A stretch of DNA of 64,000 nt from sequence record MZ574432.2; one strand, written 5' to 3'. This document shows, piece by piece, positions 5,262 through 57,833 of the stretch. Made by a program: the position numbers and the translations under genes. The notes below the pieces were generated by a model. The model saw only the letters and a program-made list of their open reading frames with translations. It ran no database searches and was not told where the DNA came from. The first letter of the stretch is position 1, and the number at the start of each line of letters is the position of its first letter.

Positions 5262-5842
5262 TCCTTGCTGGCGATCGCCAGGGCCTCGGCTTCAAGGCGC
5301 GCGGCCTTGTCGCGAAGGACGCCGGCGCCTTGGGACGGCGAAAGCAGCCGGGCGGTGTCGCGCAGTTCCTGGGCCGAGCGGCGCAGGCTGGCGATCTCGA
5401 TGTCGATCTGGTTGGACGGTTCGGCGGGCACCAGGATCACCTGGACCTTGCGGTCGTAGTCACGCGACTGCTTGCGCACCTTGGTGCGGATCGGCTTGCG
5501 CTTGACGCCGTCATGGCTGTCGTGGTGGAAGGTGTAGAGCCACGTCACCATCCCCGGCGTCTCGCTGGGGACCCGCATGTCCTTGCGACGCAGCGGGAAC
5601 TTTGGCGGCTCGATCCGCGTCCAGCGATCGTCGAAAGGGATCGCCGGCTCAAAGGTCTTGGGACCACCCTCGGGAGGGCTCTCGCGGCCGATCTTGACCC
5701 CGGATGGATCGAAAAAGGCCACGTCCATCAGAACGTCGTCGCCGCACCAGTAGGATTGACGCACCTTGCCGATGGTGATGTTGCCGTCGTGGACCTCGGC
5801 GACCCAGTCGCCTTGGACGATCGGCAGTACCTTCTCGGTCAT
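5258..5842 (-). CDS. hypothetical protein
   Basis: GGAG RBS, downstream of promoter at 5899. Confidence 0.75.
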   Translation of the reverse strand: MTEKVLPIVQGDWVAEVHDGNITIGKVRQSYWCGDDVLMDVAFFDPSGVKIGRESPPEGGPKTFEPAIPFDDRWTRIEPPKFPLRRKDMRVPSETPGMVTWLYTFHHDSHDGVKRKPIRTKVRKQSRDYDRKVQVILVPAEPSNQIDIEIASLRRSAQELRDTARLLSPSQGAGVLRDKAARLEAEALAIASKE

Positions 5843-5880
5843 GATGCGGGTGCTCCTGCGGTGGAAGTTGCGGGTCTTCT

Positions 5881-5899
5881 ATGTCACGAAAAGTGACAT
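5881..5899. promoter_or_regulatory. perfect palindrome ATGTCAC-N5-GTGACAT (candidate operator) in promoter spacer
   Basis: ATGTCACGAAAAGTGACAT fills the spacer between -35 and -10. Confidence 0.6.
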
Positions 5900-5917
5900 G
5901 TCAACTCATTTCTTGCA
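5899..5917 (-). promoter_or_regulatory. conserved promoter element (variant)
   Basis: TGCAAGAAATGAGTTGACA, 17-nt spacer, TAGAAG. Confidence 0.75.
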
Positions 5918-6067
5918 CAGTTGCCCGGCCACATAGACCGCCACGCCGACGCCCAGCAGGCCCCAGATGAGGGTCGAGCCATGCAGCACGATACGCGAGT
6001 GGGACACGTAATAGACGAGGCCAATGGCGATAATAGCGGCAATCACCAAGCCAAACCTGCTGTTCAT
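5906..6067 (-). CDS. small membrane protein, 53 aa (not in ORF track)
   Basis: CAGGAG RBS; MNSRFGLVIAAIIAIGLVYY...LCKK, two hydrophobic helices; stop lies inside the promoter element. Confidence 0.7.
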   Translation of the reverse strand: MNSRFGLVIAAIIAIGLVYYVSHSRIVLHGSTLIWGLLGVGVAVYVAGQLCKK

Positions 6068-6210
6068 GCAATCTCCTGAAACCGAAGGGGCGTAAGGCCG
6101 TTGAGCCCTGCATTACCCGTTGGTGGACCAGTCCACCGAAAATTGTGTGTGACGTGGATCGTGACCCTTGTCAACGTCCGCGTCCTGTGTCTAGGTAAGA
6201 GGGTCAAGGG
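6068..6210. promoter_or_regulatory. divergent control region between leftward and rightward gene blocks
   Basis: Strand switch; minus-strand TTGACA at 6169-6174; inverted repeat GGTGGAC-CA-GTCCACC at 6122-6137; GTGAC repeats. Confidence 0.55.
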
Positions 6211-6678
6211 ATGCAGGCGTCAATGAGTCGATACACGAGCCTTTTTCAAGAGGCGGCCAAGGTGGTCGACGAAACAGAGCAGCACCCAGGTCAGTCGATT
6301 CCGGGCTACTGGGAAATGTCCGATGAGACCTCATGGCCCGTCCTCATCGGCGTGATCATGAGCAACGCCATCAACGAGGTCTGCCGTAGGCAGCCAGATT
6401 GCGTGTTCGAGCACGCCCTGGAGCGCCTTGTCGAGGTGACATCAGGCGTGCCGATGGTCGTCAAGGGCGATCCGGCCCAGATCGCGGCCAATCGACTACG
6501 GCTGGCGGCCCAGGCGAATTTCGAGCGGGTTGAAACCGCCGTCGAGCGCTTGACCCGTCTGGCCTCCCTGGCGGCCGGCGAGTTGAAGAAGCTAGCCCCA
6601 AACGACGTCGAGTTGGAGAGACTCGCCAAGGACATTCGCGTGGCCATCGGCGACGCAAAGCATGTGAGGTTGCAGTGA
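6211..6678 (+). CDS. hypothetical protein
   Basis: First rightward ORF; start could be 6223. Confidence 0.7.
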   Translation: MQASMSRYTSLFQEAAKVVDETEQHPGQSIPGYWEMSDETSWPVLIGVIMSNAINEVCRRQPDCVFEHALERLVEVTSGVPMVVKGDPAQIAANRLRLAAQANFERVETAVERLTRLASLAAGELKKLAPNDVELERLAKDIRVAIGDAKHVRLQ

Positions 6679-7250
6679 CGACGACGAAGGTGAAGTTCAA
6701 GGGCTCCAAGCGGCTGGAGCGCCGGCGGCAAGCTCGCCTGATCCAGGCGAGCGATCGGGCCAAGGCGGTCGTCAGCCCCTATAGCCGCGCGCAGCCGGTC
6801 AACAGGCCGTCCCTGCGGCACTTGGACAGCATACCGTCGGTGACGTCCCTGGCGGGTATTCTCGAAAAGCGCGCCAAGCCCTCGCCAACGCCGTTCTACA
6901 AGGACCTGCACTGGGTATCGCCGGCCAAGGATGGCGCCGCCGCCATGGCCATGAAGGTCACCGAGATGCCCAAGCCCCATCTCCTGGCTGCGATCAGCCA
7001 TGAGCGGGACAAGCGCATTGCCTTCACGCGGATGGCGAGCGCATCATTCCCAACCGCGATGAACAAGGAGGCGCGCACCCGCGCCCAGAAAGCCGCCGCC
7101 ATCCATTGTGCGTGGCTGGTCTGCCTTGAAGCCGAGGCCATGCGCCGCGACCCCTCCTACCAGCAGTTCATCACCCAGAAGGGTCTTAGCCTGACCCAAC
7201 CCACGCCGGCGGAGATCGCCGCGCTGCCGTCCGTCTTCGTGGGCTCCTAA
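6675..7250 (+). CDS. basic hypothetical protein
   Basis: GTGA overlap with upstream stop. Confidence 0.7.
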   Translation: MTTTKVKFKGSKRLERRRQARLIQASDRAKAVVSPYSRAQPVNRPSLRHLDSIPSVTSLAGILEKRAKPSPTPFYKDLHWVSPAKDGAAAMAMKVTEMPKPHLLAAISHERDKRIAFTRMASASFPTAMNKEARTRAQKAAAIHCAWLVCLEAEAMRRDPSYQQFITQKGLSLTQPTPAEIAALPSVFVGS

Positions 7251-7255
7251 AGCTC

Positions 7256-8302
7256 ATGATGTTCGTCACCCGCTATCGCGTGCCCTCGGGCCGGACCAAG
7301 ATCACCCAGTGCTTTGCTGATTCGCCTGAACACCTCCAGGAGGTGATCAAGGCCAGGGGCATGGATGAGGTCGTCGACGACTCCGGGGTCAAGGTCGCCA
7401 AGCCGAAGCTGCCCAGCCAGTGGCTGGACCAGAAGCAGTACGCCAAGGCGATGCACGCCCTCAACTGGGTGGCGATGGTGGGTGTCCAGGCTGGCGTCGT
7501 CAGCGCCTGGGACCTGCTCAACGACGAAGGCGTGCTCCATGAGATGGCGCATCTCATTGAGTATGTCGGCGACCAGCCCAAGTGGCCTTACGGGTATGGT
7601 TTGGGCCGTGGCAAGAGCATCTTCGGGCTCGACGGCAGCTACGATCCCTACCTTGAAACCCATCTGGCCAAGGTCAGGCGCCTCTGCAAGGACCTCGAAG
7701 CCAAGGTCCCTGGCGTGGTGGATCACGAGGAACCGCAAGACCTCAAGCCCGCGCCGTTCGAGGGCGTGCTGTTCAGCGACTACAAGGCGCTGGAGCAACG
7801 CGCCATCGCCATGATGATGGAGCAGATCAAAACCAAGCCGCTCCAGGTCGATGAGTTGCGTGTGGTCTATGACGAATATTTCGAAAGCAAGCCTAGGGCC
7901 GAGCGTCGCAAGCCCATCGACGCCAAGGTGAAGGCGCCATCCGAGAAGTCGCGCGACTTCGATCGCCAGCGTCGCGAGCAGTCGCAGGCCGCCAAGGATC
8001 GCAAGGCTGATCTGGTCGCCAAGCTCAAGGCCAAGGCGCCGCCGAAAGAGGAGGCTCCCAAGCCAACGCAAACGCCCGAGGCAGCCGCGATGAACCACAT
8101 CATCAAGGCCGAAGAGACGATGAGCCAGATCATCAAGGCCTACGCCAAGGAATTCGATGATGGCTTCATGCGCAACCTGATCGTCGCGAAGCCTCCCGAG
8201 TCGCCTCTCTTCCCACCGGTACGCCTCCCGGTCCAGGTCAAGCTCGACAAGGGCGAAACCGTCATACCCCGTATCTCTCGCCATTCCCTGAATCTGCCCT
8301 AG
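7256..8302 (+). CDS. hypothetical protein with HEMAH (HExxH) motif; paralog of 10043-10573
   Basis: GVLHEMAHLI; K/A/P-rich C-terminal half. Confidence 0.75.
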   Translation: MMFVTRYRVPSGRTKITQCFADSPEHLQEVIKARGMDEVVDDSGVKVAKPKLPSQWLDQKQYAKAMHALNWVAMVGVQAGVVSAWDLLNDEGVLHEMAHLIEYVGDQPKWPYGYGLGRGKSIFGLDGSYDPYLETHLAKVRRLCKDLEAKVPGVVDHEEPQDLKPAPFEGVLFSDYKALEQRAIAMMMEQIKTKPLQVDELRVVYDEYFESKPRAERRKPIDAKVKAPSEKSRDFDRQRREQSQAAKDRKADLVAKLKAKAPPKEEAPKPTQTPEAAAMNHIIKAEETMSQIIKAYAKEFDDGFMRNLIVAKPPESPLFPPVRLPVQVKLDKGETVIPRISRHSLNLP

Positions 8303-25373: not shown

Positions 25374-26003
25374 ATGTACCCCAAGCACCACCTCATTCTC
25401 CACGGGATCGAAGACGCCGGCATGCAAGGCATGGTCCGCGCCATTCTCGGCCCGGACTACTCCTCGATCATCGTCTCCGAGAACATGATCCACCAGGAGT
25501 GGAACAACCCCAAGGCCGTGGCTGTCCTTCTCCAGCCTGTCTATGACGACGAAAACGACCGCCTGGGCGTGATCGTTGGCAAGCGCGCCATCGCGCCGCA
25601 GATCGGCGAGTGGGCGATCCCCGGCGGTTTCGTGCAGAACTTCGGCCGATCGATCGAAGAAGAAGCCGTCACCGAGTTCGAGCAGGAGATGGGCATCGCC
25701 GGCCTCACCGCCGACACCGTGCGCATGTGGCATAGCTATCCCACGCCCAACGGTCGCATCCTGTTCTTCTGTGTCAACGGCCAGACCCTGAAGGCCCGCG
25801 AGATCAAGGAGGTCCTGGGCGCAGGCAAGGGCGACGGCGAGATGAGCGACTTCAAGGTCGCCTATGAGCCGTTCCAACTGGCCTTCCCGTTCCACACCAT
25901 CGTCATGGAGAAGTTCTTCCGGTCCTTCCAGGCCGGCGCCAAGGAATTCCCCATGCCCGGCTATGGTCTGATCGCCTCTCGGGGCCATCTGCCGCAACGC
26001 TAG
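25374..26003 (+). CDS. Nudix hydrolase (divergent Nudix box)
   Basis: NPKAVAV...GEWAIPGGFV...EEEAVTEFEQEMGI. Confidence 0.75.
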   Translation: MYPKHHLILHGIEDAGMQGMVRAILGPDYSSIIVSENMIHQEWNNPKAVAVLLQPVYDDENDRLGVIVGKRAIAPQIGEWAIPGGFVQNFGRSIEEEAVTEFEQEMGIAGLTADTVRMWHSYPTPNGRILFFCVNGQTLKAREIKEVLGAGKGDGEMSDFKVAYEPFQLAFPFHTIVMEKFFRSFQAGAKEFPMPGYGLIASRGHLPQR

Positions 26004-32644: not shown

Positions 32645-34486
32645 GTGGCCCAGTCCGAAAACGTGAGCGTCGTGCTCGTCGTCTACGCGCTCTATGAGAC
32701 CGACCGCGCGATCGCGGTCAACGCCGGCCAGCTTCAGATGCAGCGGGACAATCCCGCCGCCCTGGCCTATCTCCCCAAGAGTCAGATCAAGCTGGGCGCG
32801 CCGCTGAAGGTGCATGAGGACAAGGTCCGCTCGCGCGGTATCCCGACCAGCGTCGCCGAACGCCTGGGCATTTCCAAGGTCGGCTACTACGCCGTCGACG
32901 CCGACCGCAACGCGGTCATGTCGCGTGTCGAATGGCGCCCCGTCACCATGCCCAAGTGGCTGGCCGACAAGCACGGCTGGGAAGACCAGGACATCGAGAC
33001 CATGATCGGCGTCTGCAAGACGTGGGCCTATGCCGATGTGTCCGCCGCCGACGTTCGCGCCGCCTTGGCCAAGGACGTGGCGCATGCGTGAGATGAAGCA
33101 GCGCAAGCCCTCGATCCTGCGCTGGGAGTATCAGCGCGGCGTGGCCTTCGGCTACCTCGGCGAACACCGCGTCGCCTCGGTCTACGCCTGGGAAGGCGGG
33201 ATCATGATGAAGGGCCGCTGGCGTTGGCGCATCGAACTGCCGCCGGCGCCAGGACGCAATGCGTCCGGTAAGGGGCTCTCGGAGAGCTATTGCCGCCAGC
33301 AAGCCGCCAACGCGATCCAGCATTTCATCGACACGGCCGGCCTTGCCATCAAAGCGCCGTCAGCGTAAGCATAGACGTCACGAAGTCAGTGAGGATGACA
33401 TGCCTGCGGTCTTGACCGTCGAAGACGCCCTTCGCCTCCTGGGCGACTTGCCCAAGTCGGCGATCCTGGTGATCGGTGGCGAGACCGTGTCGAGCATCAC
33501 CACTCAGCAAGGCCGCCGGCGCGAGGGCTATTTCAACGATAGCTTCAAGCCGCATGCCGACGGCCGCGTGACGGCGGTGCGCTTCTGCCAGACCGACGAG
33601 TTGTCGACCGGCGAAGTCTATGAGCGAATCGTCTGATGGCCGAGGTCCTGAACGTCGAGTTCCACGTCCTCGACGCCGTCGATGACGCCGTGGACTACCT
33701 GACCACCCAGACCGCCGCCGAAGCCAGGGCTCAAGAACTTTACGAGGCGACCGGCGAGCGACATGTCGTCGAGCAGGTCACCTACTACGCCACCGACCGC
33801 GTCGTGCTCGCGGCCTTTCCGCCCTATCCCGAAGAGGATGAAGACCTGTGATCAAGGCCCTGGCCTTCCTCTGCGCCCACGGCGAGTTTGTCCGCCTTGA
33901 GGTCAACGACCATCGCACCTGCTATGAGTCGCCCGAGCGGAACCTTCGCATGCACTCGCTCCTCCCCGAGGAGTGGTGCAACCAGATCGAGCGCGTCCTG
34001 ATCCAGGCGGCCGTCGAGAACGAATCGCCCTTGACCACGGTCAAGGTCTGGACCAACCAGCAGCGCAACGTTGACCGCCAACTGACGGTCGGCGCGTCCT
34101 TGCCCATGACCTTGGCCATGGCGCTCGATCGCCTACGGGTCTCCGAGGCGAACGTCATGCCCCTGCCGGAGTTGGAGGAGGACGCCTCCGCGCTCTTGGA
34201 GCGCTGCATGGCCTATCTCTTCTCCAACGCCCTCTCCTGGTATCTGGACGTCCAGCCCTTCTGCCCCGAGGACGCTATGCCACTCGACGCCCTGATCGAG
34301 TGCAACATGGCCGCGCCAGAGGACTGGATCGGCGAGGAGCCGTGGACGCGTGACTACACCGGTCCGTTCCACGCCCTGATCATCTATCCCGACAACCCTG
34401 TGGGAAGCTGGTGCTTCTACGGCCCGTCCGTGCCGGACCTGCTGATCAAGGGCTATCAGACGCTGAAGGAGTATCGCGCCCAATGA
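32645..34486 (+). other. run of five hypothetical CDSs (32645-33091, 33084-33368, 33400-33636, 33636-33851, 33848-34486)
   Basis: Contiguous coupled ORFs. Confidence 0.7.
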
Positions 34487-35325
34487 CCGAGACCAAGGAC
34501 GCCCTGGGCGACCGGATGAAGGCCTACGAGAAGGTCGAGACGGGGCGGCGCTTCATGCCCGGTCTGCCGGTGATCGTGCGCCTGGATGGTCACGGCTTCT
34601 CGCGCTTCACCAAGGGCCTTCAAAAACCCTTCGACATGCGCATGGTCGCCGCCATGGCCGAGACCACCAAGGCCTTGGTCGAGAAGACCCATGCGCGCCT
34701 GGGCTACACCCAGTCCGACGAGATCACCCTGGTCTTCATGCCCAAGGATGACATCGAGCAGTATTTCTTCGCCGGCAAGGTCTTCAAGATGAAGTCCGTG
34801 CTGGCCGGCCTGTGCTCGACCCTCTTCTATCGCAACTTCGAGCGCGAGTGGCTCGCCCGAACCGGGGACGCCGCCCACGACCTTACGGCCCTGACCCGCT
34901 ACCTGGAGCGTAACCCCCACTTCGATGCGCGCGCCTTCCAGGTGCCCGTCGACTACGAGGCCGCCAACGCCGTCCTCTGGCGCGTCAAAGACGCCGAGCG
35001 CAACGCCGTGCAGATGGCGGCCCAGTCGCTCTACTCGCAAAAGCAGCTTCACAAGCTGTCGACCGAGACCCTGCGCCGCAAGATCGCCGAGGGTGGCCTG
35101 GACTTCGACGCCTATCCTCGCGCCATCCGCAGCGGCAGCTTCTTCCAGTCGGTCACAGAGCTTCGGCCGATCCCGCCCGAGGCGCTGGAGCGGATGAAGG
35201 AGAAAGACCGGCCGGCGGACGGTATGATGCGACGCGCCTCGGTCCAGGAAGTGGCCGCCGAAGGTCCGGTCGCCTACCGAACGGTCGCCGATCTCCTGGG
35301 CATCGTGCCGGTGATGGACGTCTGA
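34483..35325 (+). CDS. tRNA(His) guanylyltransferase Thg1-like protein (3'-5' polymerase)
   Basis: LGDRMKAYE, VRLDGHGFSRFT, YTQSDEI, FDARAF, NAVQM; ATGA overlap at 34483. Confidence 0.9.
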   Translation: MTETKDALGDRMKAYEKVETGRRFMPGLPVIVRLDGHGFSRFTKGLQKPFDMRMVAAMAETTKALVEKTHARLGYTQSDEITLVFMPKDDIEQYFFAGKVFKMKSVLAGLCSTLFYRNFEREWLARTGDAAHDLTALTRYLERNPHFDARAFQVPVDYEAANAVLWRVKDAERNAVQMAAQSLYSQKQLHKLSTETLRRKIAEGGLDFDAYPRAIRSGSFFQSVTELRPIPPEALERMKEKDRPADGMMRRASVQEVAAEGPVAYRTVADLLGIVPVMDV

Positions 35326-36238: not shown

Positions 36239-36257
36239 TGCAAGATAACGGTTGACA
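36239..36257 (+). promoter_or_regulatory. conserved promoter element heading the porin-pnuC-nadR operon
   Basis: TGCAAGATAACGGTTGACA. Confidence 0.75.
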
Positions 36258-36311
36258 GCATAGCGTGGGCCGCCTACCCATGTCACGACCACTTTCACCA
36301 AGGGAGTTCCC

Positions 36312-36905
36312 GTGACCGACAAGACCCTGCCCCCGCCGCCCCACGTCGCCGAAGATGACCAGTTCGAGGAACTGGCGCGGGTGTGGGTGCGCCGCGATGC
36401 GGCTCCCGCCGACGGCGAGAGCCAGATCAGCCTGGGCGTCACGCTCAGCGATCGCGCCAGCTTCCACGAAGTCATGGGCCTGCTGAGCGCGGTCGCCACC
36501 GGCTACATCATCCAGCAGCCCGAAGTCGCCGCCGCCTCGGGCGAGATCAAGGACTACCTGATCGCCCAGGGCACCCAGCAATTGCTGGAGCAGACCGTCG
36601 AGGCCGCCAGCCCGCTGCGGCCCCAGCATCTCCCCGCGCCGGACGAACTGCTCTACGAGCCCGGTTCGGTCAACATCGCCAGCCTCTGGATCGATCCTAC
36701 GCAGGAAGGCACCCACACCATCTTCGCCGGCGAGCCCCAGAAGCTTGGGGCCAAGACGCTCGGCGGCCTCCTGGCGACGATGCTGCTCGAAGCCGGGCGC
36801 AACGCCGACGGCACCTTCAACGTCGACTTCATCGAGGGCCTGCAAACCTCGATCGCCACGACGACCAAGGCGTATCTGGCCCAAGAGGGTCAACCCACGC
36901 AATGA
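36312..36905 (+). CDS. hypothetical protein with two internally similar halves (DUF5076-like)
   Basis: LPPPP...EELARVWV and LPAPD...NIASLWI; family call from memory. Confidence 0.5.
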   Translation: MTDKTLPPPPHVAEDDQFEELARVWVRRDAAPADGESQISLGVTLSDRASFHEVMGLLSAVATGYIIQQPEVAAASGEIKDYLIAQGTQQLLEQTVEAASPLRPQHLPAPDELLYEPGSVNIASLWIDPTQEGTHTIFAGEPQKLGAKTLGGLLATMLLEAGRNADGTFNVDFIEGLQTSIATTTKAYLAQEGQPTQ

Positions 36906-37588
36906 TGCGCAAGGCTCTCCTGTTCTCGTCCGCCCTGGCCGCCATCCTGGCCTTGGCCACCAGCACCGAAGCCGGCGAGATCGCCGGCTCGGTCACCCTG
37001 ACCTCCGCCTACATCTCACGGGGCACCGACCAGAACGTCCTCAACGGCGCGGCCGTCCAGGGCTTCGTGACCTACGCCAAGGGTCCATTCTACGTCAGCG
37101 CCTTCGCCTCGACCATGAACTATGGCGAGGGCACGACCAAGGAACTCGACTTCTTCGGCGGCGTCCGCAAGAGCTACGGTCCTTGGACGGTCGACGTCGG
37201 TTTCGCCAACATCAACTATCCCGACAACCACACGCCGCTGAACTTCGTCGAGTACGATCTGAAGATCGATCGCGCGGTCGGCAAGGGCAACGTCGGCGTC
37301 TGGCTCGGCTACACCGACGCCTACTTCAACACCTATGGCCAGGGCGTCTGGACCGAGGCCCATGTCAGCTACCCGATCACCAGCACGGTGTCGATCAGCG
37401 GCGCGGTCGCCAACCAGGACCTGCCCAACAACTTCGACTACCGGACCTGGAACGTCGGCGTCACCAAGGCCTTCGCCCATGGCGTCTCGGCCGATCTGCG
37501 CTATAGCGACACCGATCGCCACGACCTGGACCCGCGCTGGAACACCTACGGCGCGCGGACCTCGCTGACCCTGTCCAAGAGCTTCTGA
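36902..37588 (+). CDS. outer-membrane beta-barrel protein (TorF / TIGR02001-like putative porin), 228 aa
   Basis: Sec signal peptide ending STEA; GSVTLTSAYISRGTDQ...AVQG; alternating beta-strands; C-terminal Phe (LTLSKSF). Confidence 0.8.
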   Translation: MMRKALLFSSALAAILALATSTEAGEIAGSVTLTSAYISRGTDQNVLNGAAVQGFVTYAKGPFYVSAFASTMNYGEGTTKELDFFGGVRKSYGPWTVDVGFANINYPDNHTPLNFVEYDLKIDRAVGKGNVGVWLGYTDAYFNTYGQGVWTEAHVSYPITSTVSISGAVANQDLPNNFDYRTWNVGVTKAFAHGVSADLRYSDTDRHDLDPRWNTYGARTSLTLSKSF

Positions 37589-37599
37589 AGGGGGAGCCG

Positions 37600-38235
37600 A
37601 TGAGCCTGCTTGAAATCCTCGCCACCGCCGTGACGGTCGCCTGCGTCCTACTGGCCGTCAAGCGTTCGACGTGGCAGTACCCGGTCGGGATCGTCGGTAC
37701 GATCCTGTTCTTCTTCGTCTTCCAAGGCGCCAAGCTCTACGCCAGCGCCATGCTCCAGGTGTTCTTCACCCTCGTCCAGGTCTACGGCTGGTGGTACTGG
37801 ACGCGCGGCGATCGAGGCAAGTCGCCGCCGATCACCTCCTGGAGCCCGGCCTTCACCGGGGCGATCGTGGTTGCCGGCCTCGTGGTGGGCGTGGTGCTGA
37901 GCATGATTCTCAACGCCTTCACCGACGCCAAGGTGGCGCTCTGGGACTCGGCGATCTTTGGCCTGTCCATGGCCGCTCAGTTCCTGCTCGACCGCAAGAA
38001 GCTGGAGAACTGGACCGTCTGGGGTCTGGTCAACATCATCTCGGTCTTCGTCTACTGGCAGCAAGGCCTGACCGTCGCGGCGATCCTCTATGCCGGCCTG
38101 TTCGTCAACGCCTTCTGGGGCCACTATGAGTGGGCCAAGGCCAAGCGCGCCCAGAAGATCGTCTGGGACGCCGAGGCCCAGAAGTACCCGGCCGCGCCCA
38201 TCCATGAACCGAAGCCTGGGGACCTGTTGACTTGA
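37600..38235 (+). CDS. pnuC: nicotinamide riboside transporter PnuC
   Basis: STWQYPVG, YASAMLQVFF...YGWWYW, RKKLENWTVWGLVNIIS; multiple TM segments. Confidence 0.9.
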   Translation: MSLLEILATAVTVACVLLAVKRSTWQYPVGIVGTILFFFVFQGAKLYASAMLQVFFTLVQVYGWWYWTRGDRGKSPPITSWSPAFTGAIVVAGLVVGVVLSMILNAFTDAKVALWDSAIFGLSMAAQFLLDRKKLENWTVWGLVNIISVFVYWQQGLTVAAILYAGLFVNAFWGHYEWAKAKRAQKIVWDAEAQKYPAAPIHEPKPGDLLT

Positions 38236-39275
38236 ACCACGCCGTCGAAGTCCCCGCCCATCCCTTCGAAGCCAAGCCCGAGCGCGGCTTTGTCCTGGGC
38301 AAGTTCATGCCGCCGACCGAGGGCCATCGGTTCCTCTGCGAGTTCGCCAGAGAGTACGTGCAGAAGCTGACCATCCTGGTCTGCTCGATGCCCGATGAGC
38401 CCATCGACGGCTTCCTGCGCTTCCAGTGGATGCGCGAGATGTTCCCGGACTGCAATGTCCAGTGGTGTCAGGAAATCCTGCCCCAGGAACCCGTCGGCGA
38501 GGACCCGGAGTTCTGGTCGACCTGGGCCGGCGTCATCCAGAAGTACGGCAGCCGCTACGGCGAGCCTTATCGCCCCGATGTCGTCTTCGCCTCGGAGACC
38601 TATGGTCACAAGCTGGCCGCCAGCGTCGGCGCGCGGTTCGTGCCCTGCGACATCAGTCGCACCGCGCGCGACATCTCCGCGACCCGCATCCGCGCCCAGC
38701 CCCTGGCCAACTGGTCCTACATCCCCAACGTCGTGCGCCCGCACTTCGTCAAGCGGGTGACCATGTTCGGCCCCGAAAGCAGCGGCAAGTCGACCCTGGC
38801 GACCGCGCTCGGCAAGGTCTTCGACACCATCGTCGTGCCCGAGTATGGTCGCACCTATACCGAGCAGTTCGGAGCCGACGTCGGCGCCGAGGACCTGATC
38901 CGCATCGTCCAGGGTCACCGCGCCAGCGTGGCGGCGGCCAAGCGCCAAGCCAACCGCATCATGTTCGAGGACACCGACCCGATCATGAGCGCGGTCTGGG
39001 CCGACATGCTGGGCGTCGCGCGCGACCCCTGGTTCGACAGCTTTGACGACAAGGCCGACCTTTATCTGCTGTGCGGCGTCGACATCCCCTGGGAAGACGA
39101 CGGGACGCGCTACTTCCCCAGGCAGTCCGACCGCGAGCGCTTCTATGATCTCTGCAAGGCGGAACTCGAACGGCGCGGCTGCCGCTACATCGAGATCAGC
39201 GGGTCCATGCTGGAGCGCCGGGTCCAGGCGATCGCGGCAGTGACCAAAACCTTTGGCATCGAGGCGGCGATTTGA
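38232..39275 (+). CDS. nadR: bifunctional NMN adenylyltransferase / ribosylnicotinamide kinase (NadR, no HTH)
   Basis: GKFMPPTEGH, ISATRIR, Walker A GPESSGKST, EYGRTY, DTD, WEDDGTR. Confidence 0.9.
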   Translation: MNHAVEVPAHPFEAKPERGFVLGKFMPPTEGHRFLCEFAREYVQKLTILVCSMPDEPIDGFLRFQWMREMFPDCNVQWCQEILPQEPVGEDPEFWSTWAGVIQKYGSRYGEPYRPDVVFASETYGHKLAASVGARFVPCDISRTARDISATRIRAQPLANWSYIPNVVRPHFVKRVTMFGPESSGKSTLATALGKVFDTIVVPEYGRTYTEQFGADVGAEDLIRIVQGHRASVAAAKRQANRIMFEDTDPIMSAVWADMLGVARDPWFDSFDDKADLYLLCGVDIPWEDDGTRYFPRQSDRERFYDLCKAELERRGCRYIEISGSMLERRVQAIAAVTKTFGIEAAI

Positions 39276-39658
39276 GTACCTTCACCTATCTGGGCATCCC
39301 CTACACCTCCAAGAACCCCGACCCGGTCGCGGCCGAAGCCGAACGCGCCGCGCGCATGGTCGCGTTCTGGAAGGGCTGCGCGTTCCTGATCGAGCGGGGC
39401 GACAATGTCGTCTCGCCCATGACCCTGGAGCCGGCCCTGACGGTCGTGCCCGACATCCCCTACGATTGGCCGTTCTGGCAGCACTATTCTCGCCGGATGC
39501 TGGCCACCTGCACACGTCTGGTGGTGATGACGCTGCCGGGCTGGGAAGTCTCCTCGGGCATTGCCGGTGAGATCGAGGAAGCCGAACGCCTGGGCCTGGA
39601 GATCGAGTATCTGGCGCCCGAAGCTGTGGACGCCTGGGTCGCCGGGCGGCAGGCTTAG
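39272..39658 (+). CDS. DUF1937 family protein (nucleoside deoxyribosyltransferase-like fold)
   Basis: YLGIPY, VVSP, LPGWEVSSG...EIEEAERLG. Confidence 0.75.
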   Translation: MSTFTYLGIPYTSKNPDPVAAEAERAARMVAFWKGCAFLIERGDNVVSPMTLEPALTVVPDIPYDWPFWQHYSRRMLATCTRLVVMTLPGWEVSSGIAGEIEEAERLGLEIEYLAPEAVDAWVAGRQA

Positions 39659-39721: not shown

Positions 39722-41159
39722 ATGCAAGATTCGGTCAAGGACGATCCGTTCGGCGACGACCACGGCTTCCTCATGTATGTGGACGCCCACTGCCGCACGC
39801 CGCGCTGCCTCTTCCACATCGACCATATCGAGCGCTTCGCCAAGCTGGCCGGCGGGGAGATCAATCGCGCGGACTGGCGCGGGGAATGGTTTTCGATGGA
39901 CCAGGAGTTCTGCGAGCCGTTCCTGAAGCGCGCCTTCGCGCGCCTGTCGGTAGCGGAGCCGGCCTGATGGCGTTCGGGACCCTTGAGGGCGAGCGCTGTT
40001 GGCGGAACGGATGCGACGGCGTGATCGAGGCGCCGGCGGCCGAAAACTGCACCTGCTTCCAACGCCCGCCCTGCAACGCCTGCGTCACCCCGCGAGAGGT
40101 CTGTCTGACCTGCGGGTGGATCGCCGCCGAGGAGGGCGAGCCGCTCAATGGCTTCCTGGTCCACTACAACGAGGACCGCACGGTCCTCACCGACTGCAAG
40201 CCCAGGCCGCTGGACCCGCGCAAGATCGATTGGCGCTCGCGGTCTCACTCCAATGCCTCCATGATCAAGGAGGGTGTCTTCCCGCCCGGCCTCTCGCGAG
40301 AGGACGTCGAAAAAGCCGTCGCGGGAACCTTCGGCGGCCGGTTTGTCCATTTCGATCCCGTGGCCGGCGCCTTCAAGTACATCGCCTACACCGATTAAGA
40401 GACCCATGACCCACCGTGACGCCACGCCCGCCGACTTCGAGGGCAAGAAGATCATCCTGGCCGAAGTCGACGCCATCAACGTCTGGCGGCTGCACTTCGA
40501 CGACGGGACTAACGTCACCGTCGAACTCACCTATTTTGGTCCGCTGCTAGGTTACGGCATGGCGGTATGCGAGTGCGATCAACCCGTCCCGGAGCTAGTG
40601 CCTTGACCCCGGAAAGCATCGATCATCCCACGCGAGGCCCGCTGACCCGGATCGGCTTCTACGTCTATGGCGGGGAGGTGGACGATCCCAGCCTGCCTCT
40701 GCCCGACGATGGCTCGCAGGTGACGCCGGCGCTCTTTCGCGCCCAGACCTTCGTGGTGATCGGCGGCTATACCTCCTACAAGGGGGCCTACGACGCCTGG
40801 AAGGCCAAGGCCTGGGCGACGGTCGACAATGCCCACGCCCGTTACCGGATCGCCGAAGTCTACGCCGAGGACCTTCCGCCGCTGCGGTCCGATCAAGGGC
40901 TTCTGCCGGGCACGATCAGCAACAAGATCGTCAGTCTCGCCTACCAGATGGGAGGCCGGTCCTGATGGACGTCAATCTCATCGAAATCTCGCTCGACATG
41001 ACCGTGCGCGAGCTTCTGCTACAAGCCCGCCGCGCGCTGGACGAGTCGGGCGCGTCCGACGACATCATCGGTGACGTCGACGCGGCCCTGAAGGCCGGCA
41101 CTGTCCGCCTAACGGCGGCCGAAGTCGACGCCCTCGCCACCCTGCAAATTCTCATCTGA
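39722..41159 (+). other. run of small hypothetical CDSs (39722-39967, 39967-40398, 40406-40606, 40603-40965, 40965-41159)
   Basis: Contiguous coupled ORFs; 39967-40398 is Cys-rich. Confidence 0.65.
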
Positions 41160-41975: not shown

Positions 41976-42443
41976 ATGACCTGTATCGTCTACCGCGACG
42001 GCGTCTTGGCTTGCGATAGCTGGGTGCTCGACATCTGGACCAAGATTGGCCAGTTCCCCAAGATCGCAAAGCGCGAGACCAGGGACGGCGCGATCCTGTT
42101 CGCCGCGTCGGGCAACTCTGGCCACTGCAAGACCTTCCTCGACTGGGGCCGTGGCGATGGTTTCGCCGACTGGGTCAGCGGGCAGTACGAGCCCCCGAGC
42201 CTGGGCGAAGGCGATAACACCGCCACGGGGATGGTTTTCATGCCTGATGGGAGTTGCGTGCGCTTCGATGCGGGTTTGCCTCCCTACGCGCTCCAGGGGC
42301 CGTTCTTTGCCATTGGCTCGGGGTCGTGGGTGGCGCTTGGCGCGCTTGAAGCGGGCGCGACCGCTGAGCAGGCCGTCGAGGCGGCGATCAAATGGGACGT
42401 TGGCACCAACGGCCCGGTAAGGAGCCTGAGACACCGTGATTAG
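41976..42443 (+). CDS. Ntn-hydrolase (HslV/proteasome-beta-like) peptidase
   Basis: MTCIVYRDGVLACDS with Thr2 as candidate nucleophile; AIGSG..ALGAL..GA.AEQAV..A...D. Confidence 0.7.
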   Translation: MTCIVYRDGVLACDSWVLDIWTKIGQFPKIAKRETRDGAILFAASGNSGHCKTFLDWGRGDGFADWVSGQYEPPSLGEGDNTATGMVFMPDGSCVRFDAGLPPYALQGPFFAIGSGSWVALGALEAGATAEQAVEAAIKWDVGTNGPVRSLRHRD

Positions 42444-57620: not shown

Positions 57621-57833
57621 ATGCCCTGGGACATGAAGGCCCAGCACCGCAAGCGAAGCTGCGAGGGCAAGGTCCGCTACGCCACCGAAGCCCTGGCGCG
57701 CGCCGGCGCCCAGGACATGCTCAAGCGAACCGGTCGCCGGCGCGGCGGCGTCTATCCGTGCGAGTTCTGCGGCCTATGGCACGTGTCCAGCGAGGGCAAG
57801 GGTCGCTACGTCGTTGTGCAAGAAAACTGTTGA
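57621..57833 (+). CDS. small zinc-finger-like protein, related to 56295-56579
   Basis: KVRYATEALA...YPCEFCGLWH; ends VQENC* inside promoter element. Confidence 0.7.
   Translation: MPWDMKAQHRKRSCEGKVRYATEALARAGAQDMLKRTGRRRGGVYPCEFCGLWHVSSEGKGRYVVVQENC

Follow-up and report, generated by a model that had tools for sequence, protein, structure and literature searches.

Why should a giant phage of Caulobacter keep a gene for an outer-membrane beta-barrel directly ahead of its genes for the import of nicotinamide riboside? The question is raised by a stretch of 64,000 nucleotides of the sequence record MZ574432.2 (the whole stretch is called the window below), in which a 3.4-kb region carries five genes on one strand, including those for a barrel of the TorF/Gcw_chp family, a PnuC-family facilitator and a NadR-like enzyme (Table 1). 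The window belongs to Caulobacter phage BL47 (Bertelyvirus, giant phage, 326,794 bp), with 100% identity across the 3.4-kb region, and a position in the window is converted to that in the record by adding 186000. The region is 99.7–99.8% identical in six sister isolates and about 84–85% identical in the phages CcrSC and CcrBL9. In GenBank the five genes are numbered gp352–gp356, of which only those for PnuC and a 'ribosylnicotinamide kinase' have names, and the barrel is listed as 'hypothetical protein'. A preliminary description, made from the letters of the sequence, had read the region as five tightly packed genes for the import of precursors of nicotinamide adenine dinucleotide (NAD) over both membranes, and all five open reading frames (ORFs) are indeed present, overlapping or closely spaced. 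The PnuC-NadR pair is a known phage system, NARP3, whereas the barrel appears here as a new third, outer-membrane component of it, which has strong comparative support.

Protein families of the barrel, PnuC and NadR

Family searches upheld the identities that had been proposed for the barrel, PnuC, NadR and the DUF1937 protein. The barrel matched the profile TIGR02001 'TorF family putative porin' with 106.2 bits (cut-off 47.15, E = 1.9e-30, profile positions 13–244 of 244) and PF09694 with 66.5 bits (cut-off 24, E = 4.7e-18), and by passing both curated cut-offs it resembles the bacterial TorF/Gcw_chp members from Caulobacterales and Xanthomonadales. It possesses a Sec-type signal peptide at about residues 1–24, no cysteine or lipobox, and a C-terminal phenylalanine (F228) that is invariant in 22 homologues, the signal peptide and the terminal residue having been recognized from the sequence before; further positions invariant in the TorF family, such as Y37, G41, Q44, T204 and D205, are shared as well. 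The AlphaFold2 (AF2) model computed with the 22 homologues (pLDDT, the predicted local distance difference test, of 90.1) also gives a barrel, with 12 strands behind the signal helix, and its best superpositions are with the 12-stranded channels KdgM, VhGalP (an oligogalacturonate porin) and FapF (TMt 0.79 and root-mean-square deviation 3.6 Å for KdgM, 4fqe; TM 0.63/0.67 for VhGalP, 8xua). The TM values against 16-stranded porins are 0.40–0.54 (query-normalised) and 0.31–0.38 (target-normalised). A general trimeric porin of the Porin_4/OmpF/OmpP2 type was rejected, considering the 12 strands and the Porin_4 score, which at 21 bits does not reach its cut-off of 27. Membership of the KdgM/NanC family by sequence was rejected too (no Pfam KdgM hit at E ≤ 0.1, 10–11% identity). 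Channels of the KdgM/NanC type (4fqe, 8xua) are comparable in size and strand number, and they are monomeric specific channels with dedicated uptake systems; however, their substrates are acidic sugars and the likeness is one of fold only. The predicted long loops of the barrel (residues 35–50, 106–114 and 205–217) are as conserved as its strands, which fits poorly with a surface protein under diversifying selection and fits well with loops that shape a channel.

The next protein is a PnuC according to both the equivalog TIGR01528 (98 bits, cut-off 42.45) and PF04973 (162.7 bits, cut-off 27.3, E = 1.1e-47), with further matches to phrog_1880 (1.3e-30) and to the PnuC of N. mucosa, 4QTN (E = 1e-5 over residues 7–182). 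Since it hits this equivalog and constantly adjoins NadR, its substrate is presumed to be nicotinamide riboside. The NadR protein combines an NMN (nicotinamide mononucleotide) adenylyltransferase with a ribosylnicotinamide kinase (PF13521 at residues 175–329, 3.9e-29; TIGR00125 at residues 18–53). Its best match among solved structures is H. influenzae NadR 1LW7 (E = 1e-35, residues 18–341), and in the alignment with it the (T/H)xGH nucleotidyltransferase motif, SATxIR, Walker A and the DTD of Walker B are kept, so the motifs described before as intact are confirmed. It also matched phrog_3462 (1.8e-64) and PDB 9x6f, a NadR-type 'nicotinamide-nucleotide adenylyltransferase' (1.7e-29). The N-terminal helix-turn-helix (HTH) domain is missing: the match to NF005988 covers profile positions 63–405 of 411, and in 1LW7, a construct without the HTH domain, the aligned part begins at chain residue 4.

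Table 1. Features of the 3.4-kb region of Caulobacter phage BL47, in window positions.
Feature	Position	Strand	Remarks
Promoter-like element	36242..36278	+	15-nt block ending GTTGAC, about 16 nt, CTA-containing block; 34 nt 5' of gp352 start
gp352, 197 aa, cytoplasmic-looking	36312..36905	+	GTG start, AGGGAG Shine-Dalgarno
TorF/Gcw_chp outer-membrane beta-barrel (predicted), 228 aa	36902..37588	+	ATGA overlap with gp352
PnuC-family inner-membrane facilitator, 211 aa	37600..38235	+	11-nt spacer after barrel gene, holding GGGGGAG (Shine-Dalgarno)
NadR-like bifunctional enzyme, 347 aa	38232..39275	+	4-nt overlap with PnuC gene
DUF1937 protein, 128 aa	39272..39658	+	4-nt overlap with NadR gene

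Distribution of the trio in phages and in bacteria

Among 50,697 phage records the barrel was found in the 11 Bertelyvirus records only, and a scan of IMG/VR gave CcrSC and CcrBL9 and nothing new, while NadR homologues occur in 734 of the same records. A protein database contained 17 relatives of the barrel at 50–84% identity. We read the context of every relative that lies on a long enough contig (ten look-ups) and of one more found via NadR, and in all of these 11 independent contexts the barrel gene stands immediately 5' of PnuC-NadR, over a range of barrel identity from 84% to about 30%; the synteny proposed before is thus kept in every relative with readable context. The contexts comprise three Bertelyvirus lineages and the loci that we number L008, L095, L098, L005/L006, L004, L012, L009–L011, L096, L007 and L103. 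The gap between the barrel and PnuC holds no to two small non-homologous ORFs, and once an ORF of 314 amino acids. A conserved small protein between the two was considered and rejected, as the ORFs in L004, L007, L008 and L010 are mutually unrelated and BL47 has none. Except for the metagenomic contig L008, the distant contigs have no other genes in common with the window and their GC contents range from 42 to 64%. They look viral: L005 has a tail fibre gene, L007 encodes GcrA and a protein resembling homing endonucleases, and ORFans occur in runs.

In most of the distant contexts the trio lies within a larger NAD cluster, which encodes PncA, NadE, NadM-Nudix and a PncB-like phosphoribosyltransferase and in some cases a Macro protein as well. 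Such large clusters are seen in L004, L005/L006, L007, L009–L011, L012, L095 and L096, where NadE is of the NH3- or the glutamine-type and Macro or His_Phos_1 proteins are sometimes encoded; their PncB-like enzyme shares 53–57% identity with its counterparts in Agrobacterium phage Atu_ph07 and Sinorhizobium phage Phosso. Queries with the PncB-like enzyme and NadE gave no match among the Caulobacter phage records, and phages of the BL47 type carry the import branch only. The phiCbK-type Caulobacter phages, which are without PnuC-NadR, lack the barrel too. Over the distant contexts the barrels have a mean pairwise identity of 61%, compared with 64% in NadR and 48% in PnuC, and the distances of barrel and NadR are correlated (Spearman 0.79 over all pairs, 0.55 in the distant set).

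The most divergent context, L103, is contig JBINOA010003469.1 (1.14 Mb) of GCA_043956695.1, where the barrel (5716–6396), PnuC (6409–7017) and NadR (7001–7984) follow one another. Its barrel, about 30% identical to that of BL47, scores 125 bits against the AmtB-linked bacterial barrels described below and 94 bits against the phage clade; thus it is closer to the bacterial barrels, which suggests a second, separate recruitment. The region around it has 42% GC and phage-like genes (T7-kinase-like, Y16D-like and a HaeIII-type restriction enzyme).

The closest cellular relatives of the barrel are at most 37% identical and belong mostly to Caulobacterales, while Rhodospirillaceae and Xanthomonadales supply a few. 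A total of 161 loci with bacterial-type barrels was analysed, 80 from genomes and 81 from metagenomes (L014–L093 and L107–L186). Neither PnuC, NadR nor DUF1937 was found near any of these barrels by tBlastn, nor was PnuC by a profile hidden Markov model built from 14 PnuC sequences, so the linkage that the preliminary description had singled out as the unusual part is in fact absent from the bacterial-type loci. Instead, a gene for the ammonium channel AmtB adjoins the barrel in 27 of the 80 genome and 43 of the 81 metagenome loci, together 70/161 or about 44% (for example, L027:4534–5880 beside the barrel at 5974–6666), a pairing that our literature searches did not find described. Conversely, two bacterial pnuC-nadR loci, with NadR 58–63% identical to the phage NadR, have no barrel; the one from Caulobacter sp. 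encodes a NadR of 63% and a PnuC of 51% identity. The other (L101:1826–8008), on a 3.7-Mb bacterial chromosome with a NadR of 58% identity, has beside pnuC-nadR a divergently transcribed gene for a TonB-dependent receptor of 1010 amino acids and one for an exported protein of 459 amino acids; this may be how a cell overcomes the same obstacle at the outer membrane.

Since the bacterial barrels are without PnuC and NadR and the bacterial pnuC-nadR loci are without the barrel, the barrel-PnuC pairing is taken as a feature of phages. As judged from these sequence comparisons, the phage barrels form a distinct PnuC-linked TorF subfamily, whose apparent source is the bacterial TorF-type barrels, normally partners of AmtB, and the trio was put together by joining pnuC-nadR of bacterial origin to a barrel family usually partnered with another inner-membrane channel.

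Proposed import route, related systems and rival explanations

We propose a passive route of three steps, leading from the barrel via PnuC to NadR, which is the best reading of the data and one that we hold with moderate confidence. During infection the barrel would be inserted into the outer membrane of the host, where it would allow the passive entry of nicotinamide riboside, or of a closely similar pyridine nucleoside, to the periplasm; PnuC would move the nucleoside over the inner membrane by facilitated diffusion; and the kinase domain of NadR would trap it as NMN, from which the NMN adenylyltransferase domain would make NAD, either for counter-defence or as a NAD top-up in a long infection. 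As none of the steps would require TonB or transport powered by ATP, the flux would be drawn by phosphorylation. Facilitated diffusion with metabolic trapping is described for Pnu transporters (PMC5749112), and the rebuilding by phage PnuC-NadR of NAD drained by host defences or phage metabolism is the NARP3 route (PMC13464706). The host gives a rationale for the outer-membrane step. C. crescentus is reported to have no porins of the OmpF/C, Tsx or LamB type and to rely on 67 TonB-dependent receptors (PMC4659666), and because Caulobacter lacks general and nucleoside porins, the addition of a barrel by the phage makes sense: without it, PnuC of the phage would depend on whatever admits the nucleoside to the periplasm of such a host. 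Phages of porin-rich hosts, on the other hand, have NadR without this barrel (NadR in 734 records, the barrel in 11). Thus the barrel gene ahead of PnuC-NadR probably serves the passage of nicotinamide riboside through the outer membrane of a porin-poor host.

The inner two steps have a close precedent. PnuC and NadR pairs of phages were flagged in 2024 (10.1101/2024.02.11.579819), and in 2026 NARP3 of the Escherichia phage Bas30/TrudiRoth was shown to import nicotinamide riboside, to make NAD and to defeat Sir2-HerA (Sci Adv, PMC13464706), so that the phage pnuC/nadR pairs which the preliminary description called known now have a name and an experimental proof. Like NARP3, which consists of an adjacent pnuC and an HTH-less nadR (kinase and adenylyltransferase) in a phage genome with a predicted path from nicotinamide riboside via NMN to NAD, BL47 has adjacent genes for PnuC and an HTH-less NadR, with a 4-nt overlap, and its NadR is 28.6% identical to that of TrudiRoth (E = 2e-28). 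The differences are that NARP3 is described as a two-gene system of Enterobacteriaceae phages, whereas BL47 has a third, outer-membrane gene fixed upstream, the PnuC gene ahead of the NadR gene with its stop codon overlapping the next start, and nearest relatives from Alphaproteobacteria. The terms outer-membrane step, porin and Caulobacter have no occurrence in the NARP3 paper (PMC13464706), and our literature searches gave no experimental data on NAD restoration or rescue from defence in Caulobacter phages. The NAD gene clusters and NARP2 of jumbo phages (PMC11662467; Osterman et al., 10.1101/2024.02.11.579819) are the kind of cluster in which the distant relatives embed the trio, and these papers list pnuC and no outer-membrane component.

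A cellular system offers another comparison. H. influenzae takes up NAD and nicotinamide riboside by means of the porin OmpP2, the periplasmic NadN and e(P4), PnuC and NadR. The gene for OmpP2, a trimeric general porin with 16 strands, lies apart from the others in the bacterial chromosome. Both routes would combine an outer-membrane pore, a PnuC facilitator and trapping by NadR over two membranes; in contrast to OmpP2, however, the phage barrel is small, 12-stranded and of the TorF type, is genetically joined to its module, and comes without a periplasmic nucleotidase. The bacterial TorF members differ in their neighbours, with amtB in 70 of the 161 loci and pnuC or nadR in none.

Several points weigh against this import route. 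The literature searches found no characterised member of TorF/Gcw_chp, and a PDB sequence search with the barrel profile had no hit, so the family is without a solved structure. The outer-membrane site and the loop topology of the barrel are deduced from the signal peptide, the C-terminal phenylalanine and general rules for outer-membrane proteins, and an open pore wide enough for a nucleoside of 255 Da is a presumption. The substrate of AmtB, the partner of the closest bacterial barrels, is far smaller than a nucleoside. NadR stays below the equivalog cut-offs of TIGR01526 (239.8 bits against 341.15, 4.2e-71) and NF005988 (136.6 against 201) and is therefore a divergent enzyme of the NadR type and not the curated equivalog. 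The relatives of the trio are mostly metagenomic contigs, whose viral nature is judged from phage-like genes and ORFans, and the bacterial pnuC-nadR loci that were compared are two in number. Lastly, fresh water may contain little nicotinamide riboside in the free form.

Three other explanations were weighed. The barrel could belong to a NAD module and still serve another solute, such as NMN or NAD set free when nearby cells lyse, the nicotinate or nicotinamide used by the PncA/PncB branch, or the ammonium used by an NH3-dependent NadE. Its position inside clusters with PncA, the PncB-like enzyme, NadM-Nudix and NadE in the distant relatives agrees with this, as do the NH3-type NadE genes directly 5' of the barrel in L004, L007 and L009 and the link of the closest bacterial barrels to AmtB. 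However, PnuC-NadR is the sole constant neighbour of the barrel, and Bertelyvirus, L098 and L103 have barrel-PnuC-NadR without PncA, PncB or NadE, while AmtB is in no phage cluster. Moreover, ammonia and nicotinamide would not need a channel. Genes for a phosphatase or nucleotidase of the periplasm are absent; the His_Phos_1 protein in L005 opens with the catalytic motif and has no signal peptide. We therefore consider another solute unlikely. It is even less probable, in our estimation, that the barrel is unrelated to NAD and merely shares the transcription unit while it remodels the surface, by superinfection exclusion, by the receptor masking that had been named as the alternative at the outset, or by stabilising the envelope in a long latency. 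Phage transcription units do mix functions, that of BL47 perhaps over about 21 kb, and a Foldseek search against BFVD found other phage-encoded outer-membrane barrels in viral proteomes. Outer-membrane barrels of phages are known from lambdoid prophages, which have porins, and from the Lom type, while our literature searches on phage-encoded porins and porin-type auxiliary metabolic genes gave nothing useful. Against a surface role, receptor masking included, stand the adjacency kept in 11 contexts with wholly different other genes, one of them with an apparently separately recruited barrel, the divergence of the barrel, which is as slow as that of NadR, and the predicted surface loops, which are not hypervariable; nor does the barrel occur in the phiCbK-type phages that lack PnuC-NadR.

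The linkage could also be purely historical, if a bacterial barrel-pnuC-nadR operon had been captured once and its order kept by inertia without functional coupling. The close bacterial relatives of NadR and PnuC, including those of a Caulobacter species (63% and 51% identity), would agree with it and indicate that the module derived from bacteria of the host's group. Yet such an operon was not seen in bacteria (0/161 barrel loci with PnuC or NadR, 0/2 pnuC-nadR loci with a barrel), the gene order persists to 50% barrel identity and in L103 to about 30%, and the pair stays together where unrelated ORFs have been inserted between barrel and PnuC. A capture without coupling thus seems quite improbable to us.

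Returning to the passive route from barrel to NadR, a wider proposal goes beyond it, for and against which we see the case as evenly balanced: phages of porin-poor diderm hosts may have added to NARP3 an outer-membrane channel of its own, in one event or perhaps in two independent ones, by re-pairing a TorF barrel, usually a partner of AmtB, with PnuC. Phage NAD reconstitution (NARP1, NARP2 and NARP3) is a current topic, and the described versions ignore the outer membrane. If the route is true, outer-membrane permeability would limit the salvage of precursors in hosts without general porins, and phages would bring their own channel, the barrel being the first phage auxiliary gene by which a nutrient gains passage through the outer membrane of the host. 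The large TorF/Gcw_chp family would likewise receive a first functional assignment, that of small solute channels serving specific inner-membrane facilitators, with AmtB as the partner in bacteria and PnuC in phages. Furthermore, a channel made by the phage would alter the permeability of the infected cell to other small molecules.

The transcription unit and the genes around the trio

The promoter element reported upstream of gp352 proved to belong to a family. Its 15-nt block (36242–36256) recurs at 20 sites when the whole window is searched with at most 3 mismatches, against 1.5 expected, and none of 100 shuffles reached 20. The sites span positions 392–62401 and their orientation matches the genes, the minus-strand copies reaching to about 5.9 kb and the plus-strand copies starting at 16.8 kb, each just 5' of a gene; every copy lies 50–70 nt ahead of the start codon, with the CTA-rich block about 16 nt past the invariant GTTGAC. 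The copy upstream of gp352 is kept in CcrSC, CcrBL9 and L008 although the flanks diverge. An E. coli-type consensus promoter scan gave nothing on the plus strand and missed the element, which is hence defined by its recurrence and conservation. The barrel, PnuC and NadR genes share this one element, and the arrangement of the letters indicates translational coupling or close spacing between them.

The five-gene unit of the preliminary description holds for its start at the element, but its end after the DUF1937 gene is not supported, the next gene following after 63 nt. The next plus-strand copy of the element is at 57820, none lying between 36242 and 57820, and a terminator scan toward 57820 gave fewer terminator-like sites than expected from shuffles and none convincing. 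Consequently the unit begins at the element, and an end at 39658 is not demonstrated. The absence of sites over this distance suggests either one very long transcription unit, which may be about 21 kb in length, or another class of promoter there.

The two outer genes of the string, gp352 and the DUF1937 gene, are co-transcribed neighbours without a demonstrable role in NAD metabolism. The product of gp352 is 28–30% identical to its orthologues in CcrSC, CcrBL9 and L008 (36312–36905 against L002:4074–4673, L003:3371–3985 and L008:7356–7997), whose neighbours barrel, PnuC and NadR are 74–90% identical; between BL47 and CcrSC the identities are about 30% for gp352, 84% for the barrel, 78% for PnuC and 90% for NadR. 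Full-length relatives number three among 1.84 billion representatives, and positional orthologues are limited to Bertelyvirus-like phages. A part for gp352 in the NAD route is disfavoured by this restriction to one lineage and its fast divergence. A weak N-terminal likeness to DUF5076 (PF16826) scores 18.8 bits, under the cut-off of 25, and DUF5076 is matched by 2 of 4 gp352 orthologues (best E = 1.4e-7). The single-sequence AF2 model of gp352, with a pLDDT of 39, is too low for use. The duplicated domain that had been read into gp352 was tried and rejected: the BLASTP comparison of the halves is not significant (E = 0.35) and hhalign is marginal (P = 0.0095 over 26 columns), leaving at best a short motif that opens each half.

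The DUF1937 protein matched PF09152 (49.6 bits, cut-off 23, 7.4e-13), phrog_355 'nucleoside 2-deoxyribosyltransferase' (1.8e-19) and, with E = 0.15, PDB 1T1J, and by these profile matches it is assigned to a family with the nucleoside 2-deoxyribosyltransferase-like fold. It follows NadR in Bertelyvirus and L008 only and is missing beside NadR in the distant NAD clusters, whereas phiCbK has an orthologue of 54% identity amid hypothetical genes, without PnuC or NadR. Because the gene occurs in phiCbK-type phages without NAD genes and is absent from the distant clusters, the function in the NAD route that had been suggested for it is unsupported.

Further NAD-related genes were not found in the window, apart from a weak NUDIX-domain protein at 25374–26003 (25.8 bits, cut-off 21.1), and the flanking gp350, gp351 and gp357–362 gave no NAD-related families. 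Other genes around the module are kept in the relatives. A homologue of the Thg1-type tRNA-His guanylyltransferase (PF04446, 8.7e-30) lies at 34483–35325, two genes 5' of the module, and is conserved in CcrSC, CcrBL9 and L008. Downstream, in the same orientation and likewise kept in relatives, are the genes for a DUF4170 protein (40603–40965, 2.4e-21) and for a protein annotated as an NTN-hydrolase/HslV-like peptidase (41976–42443).

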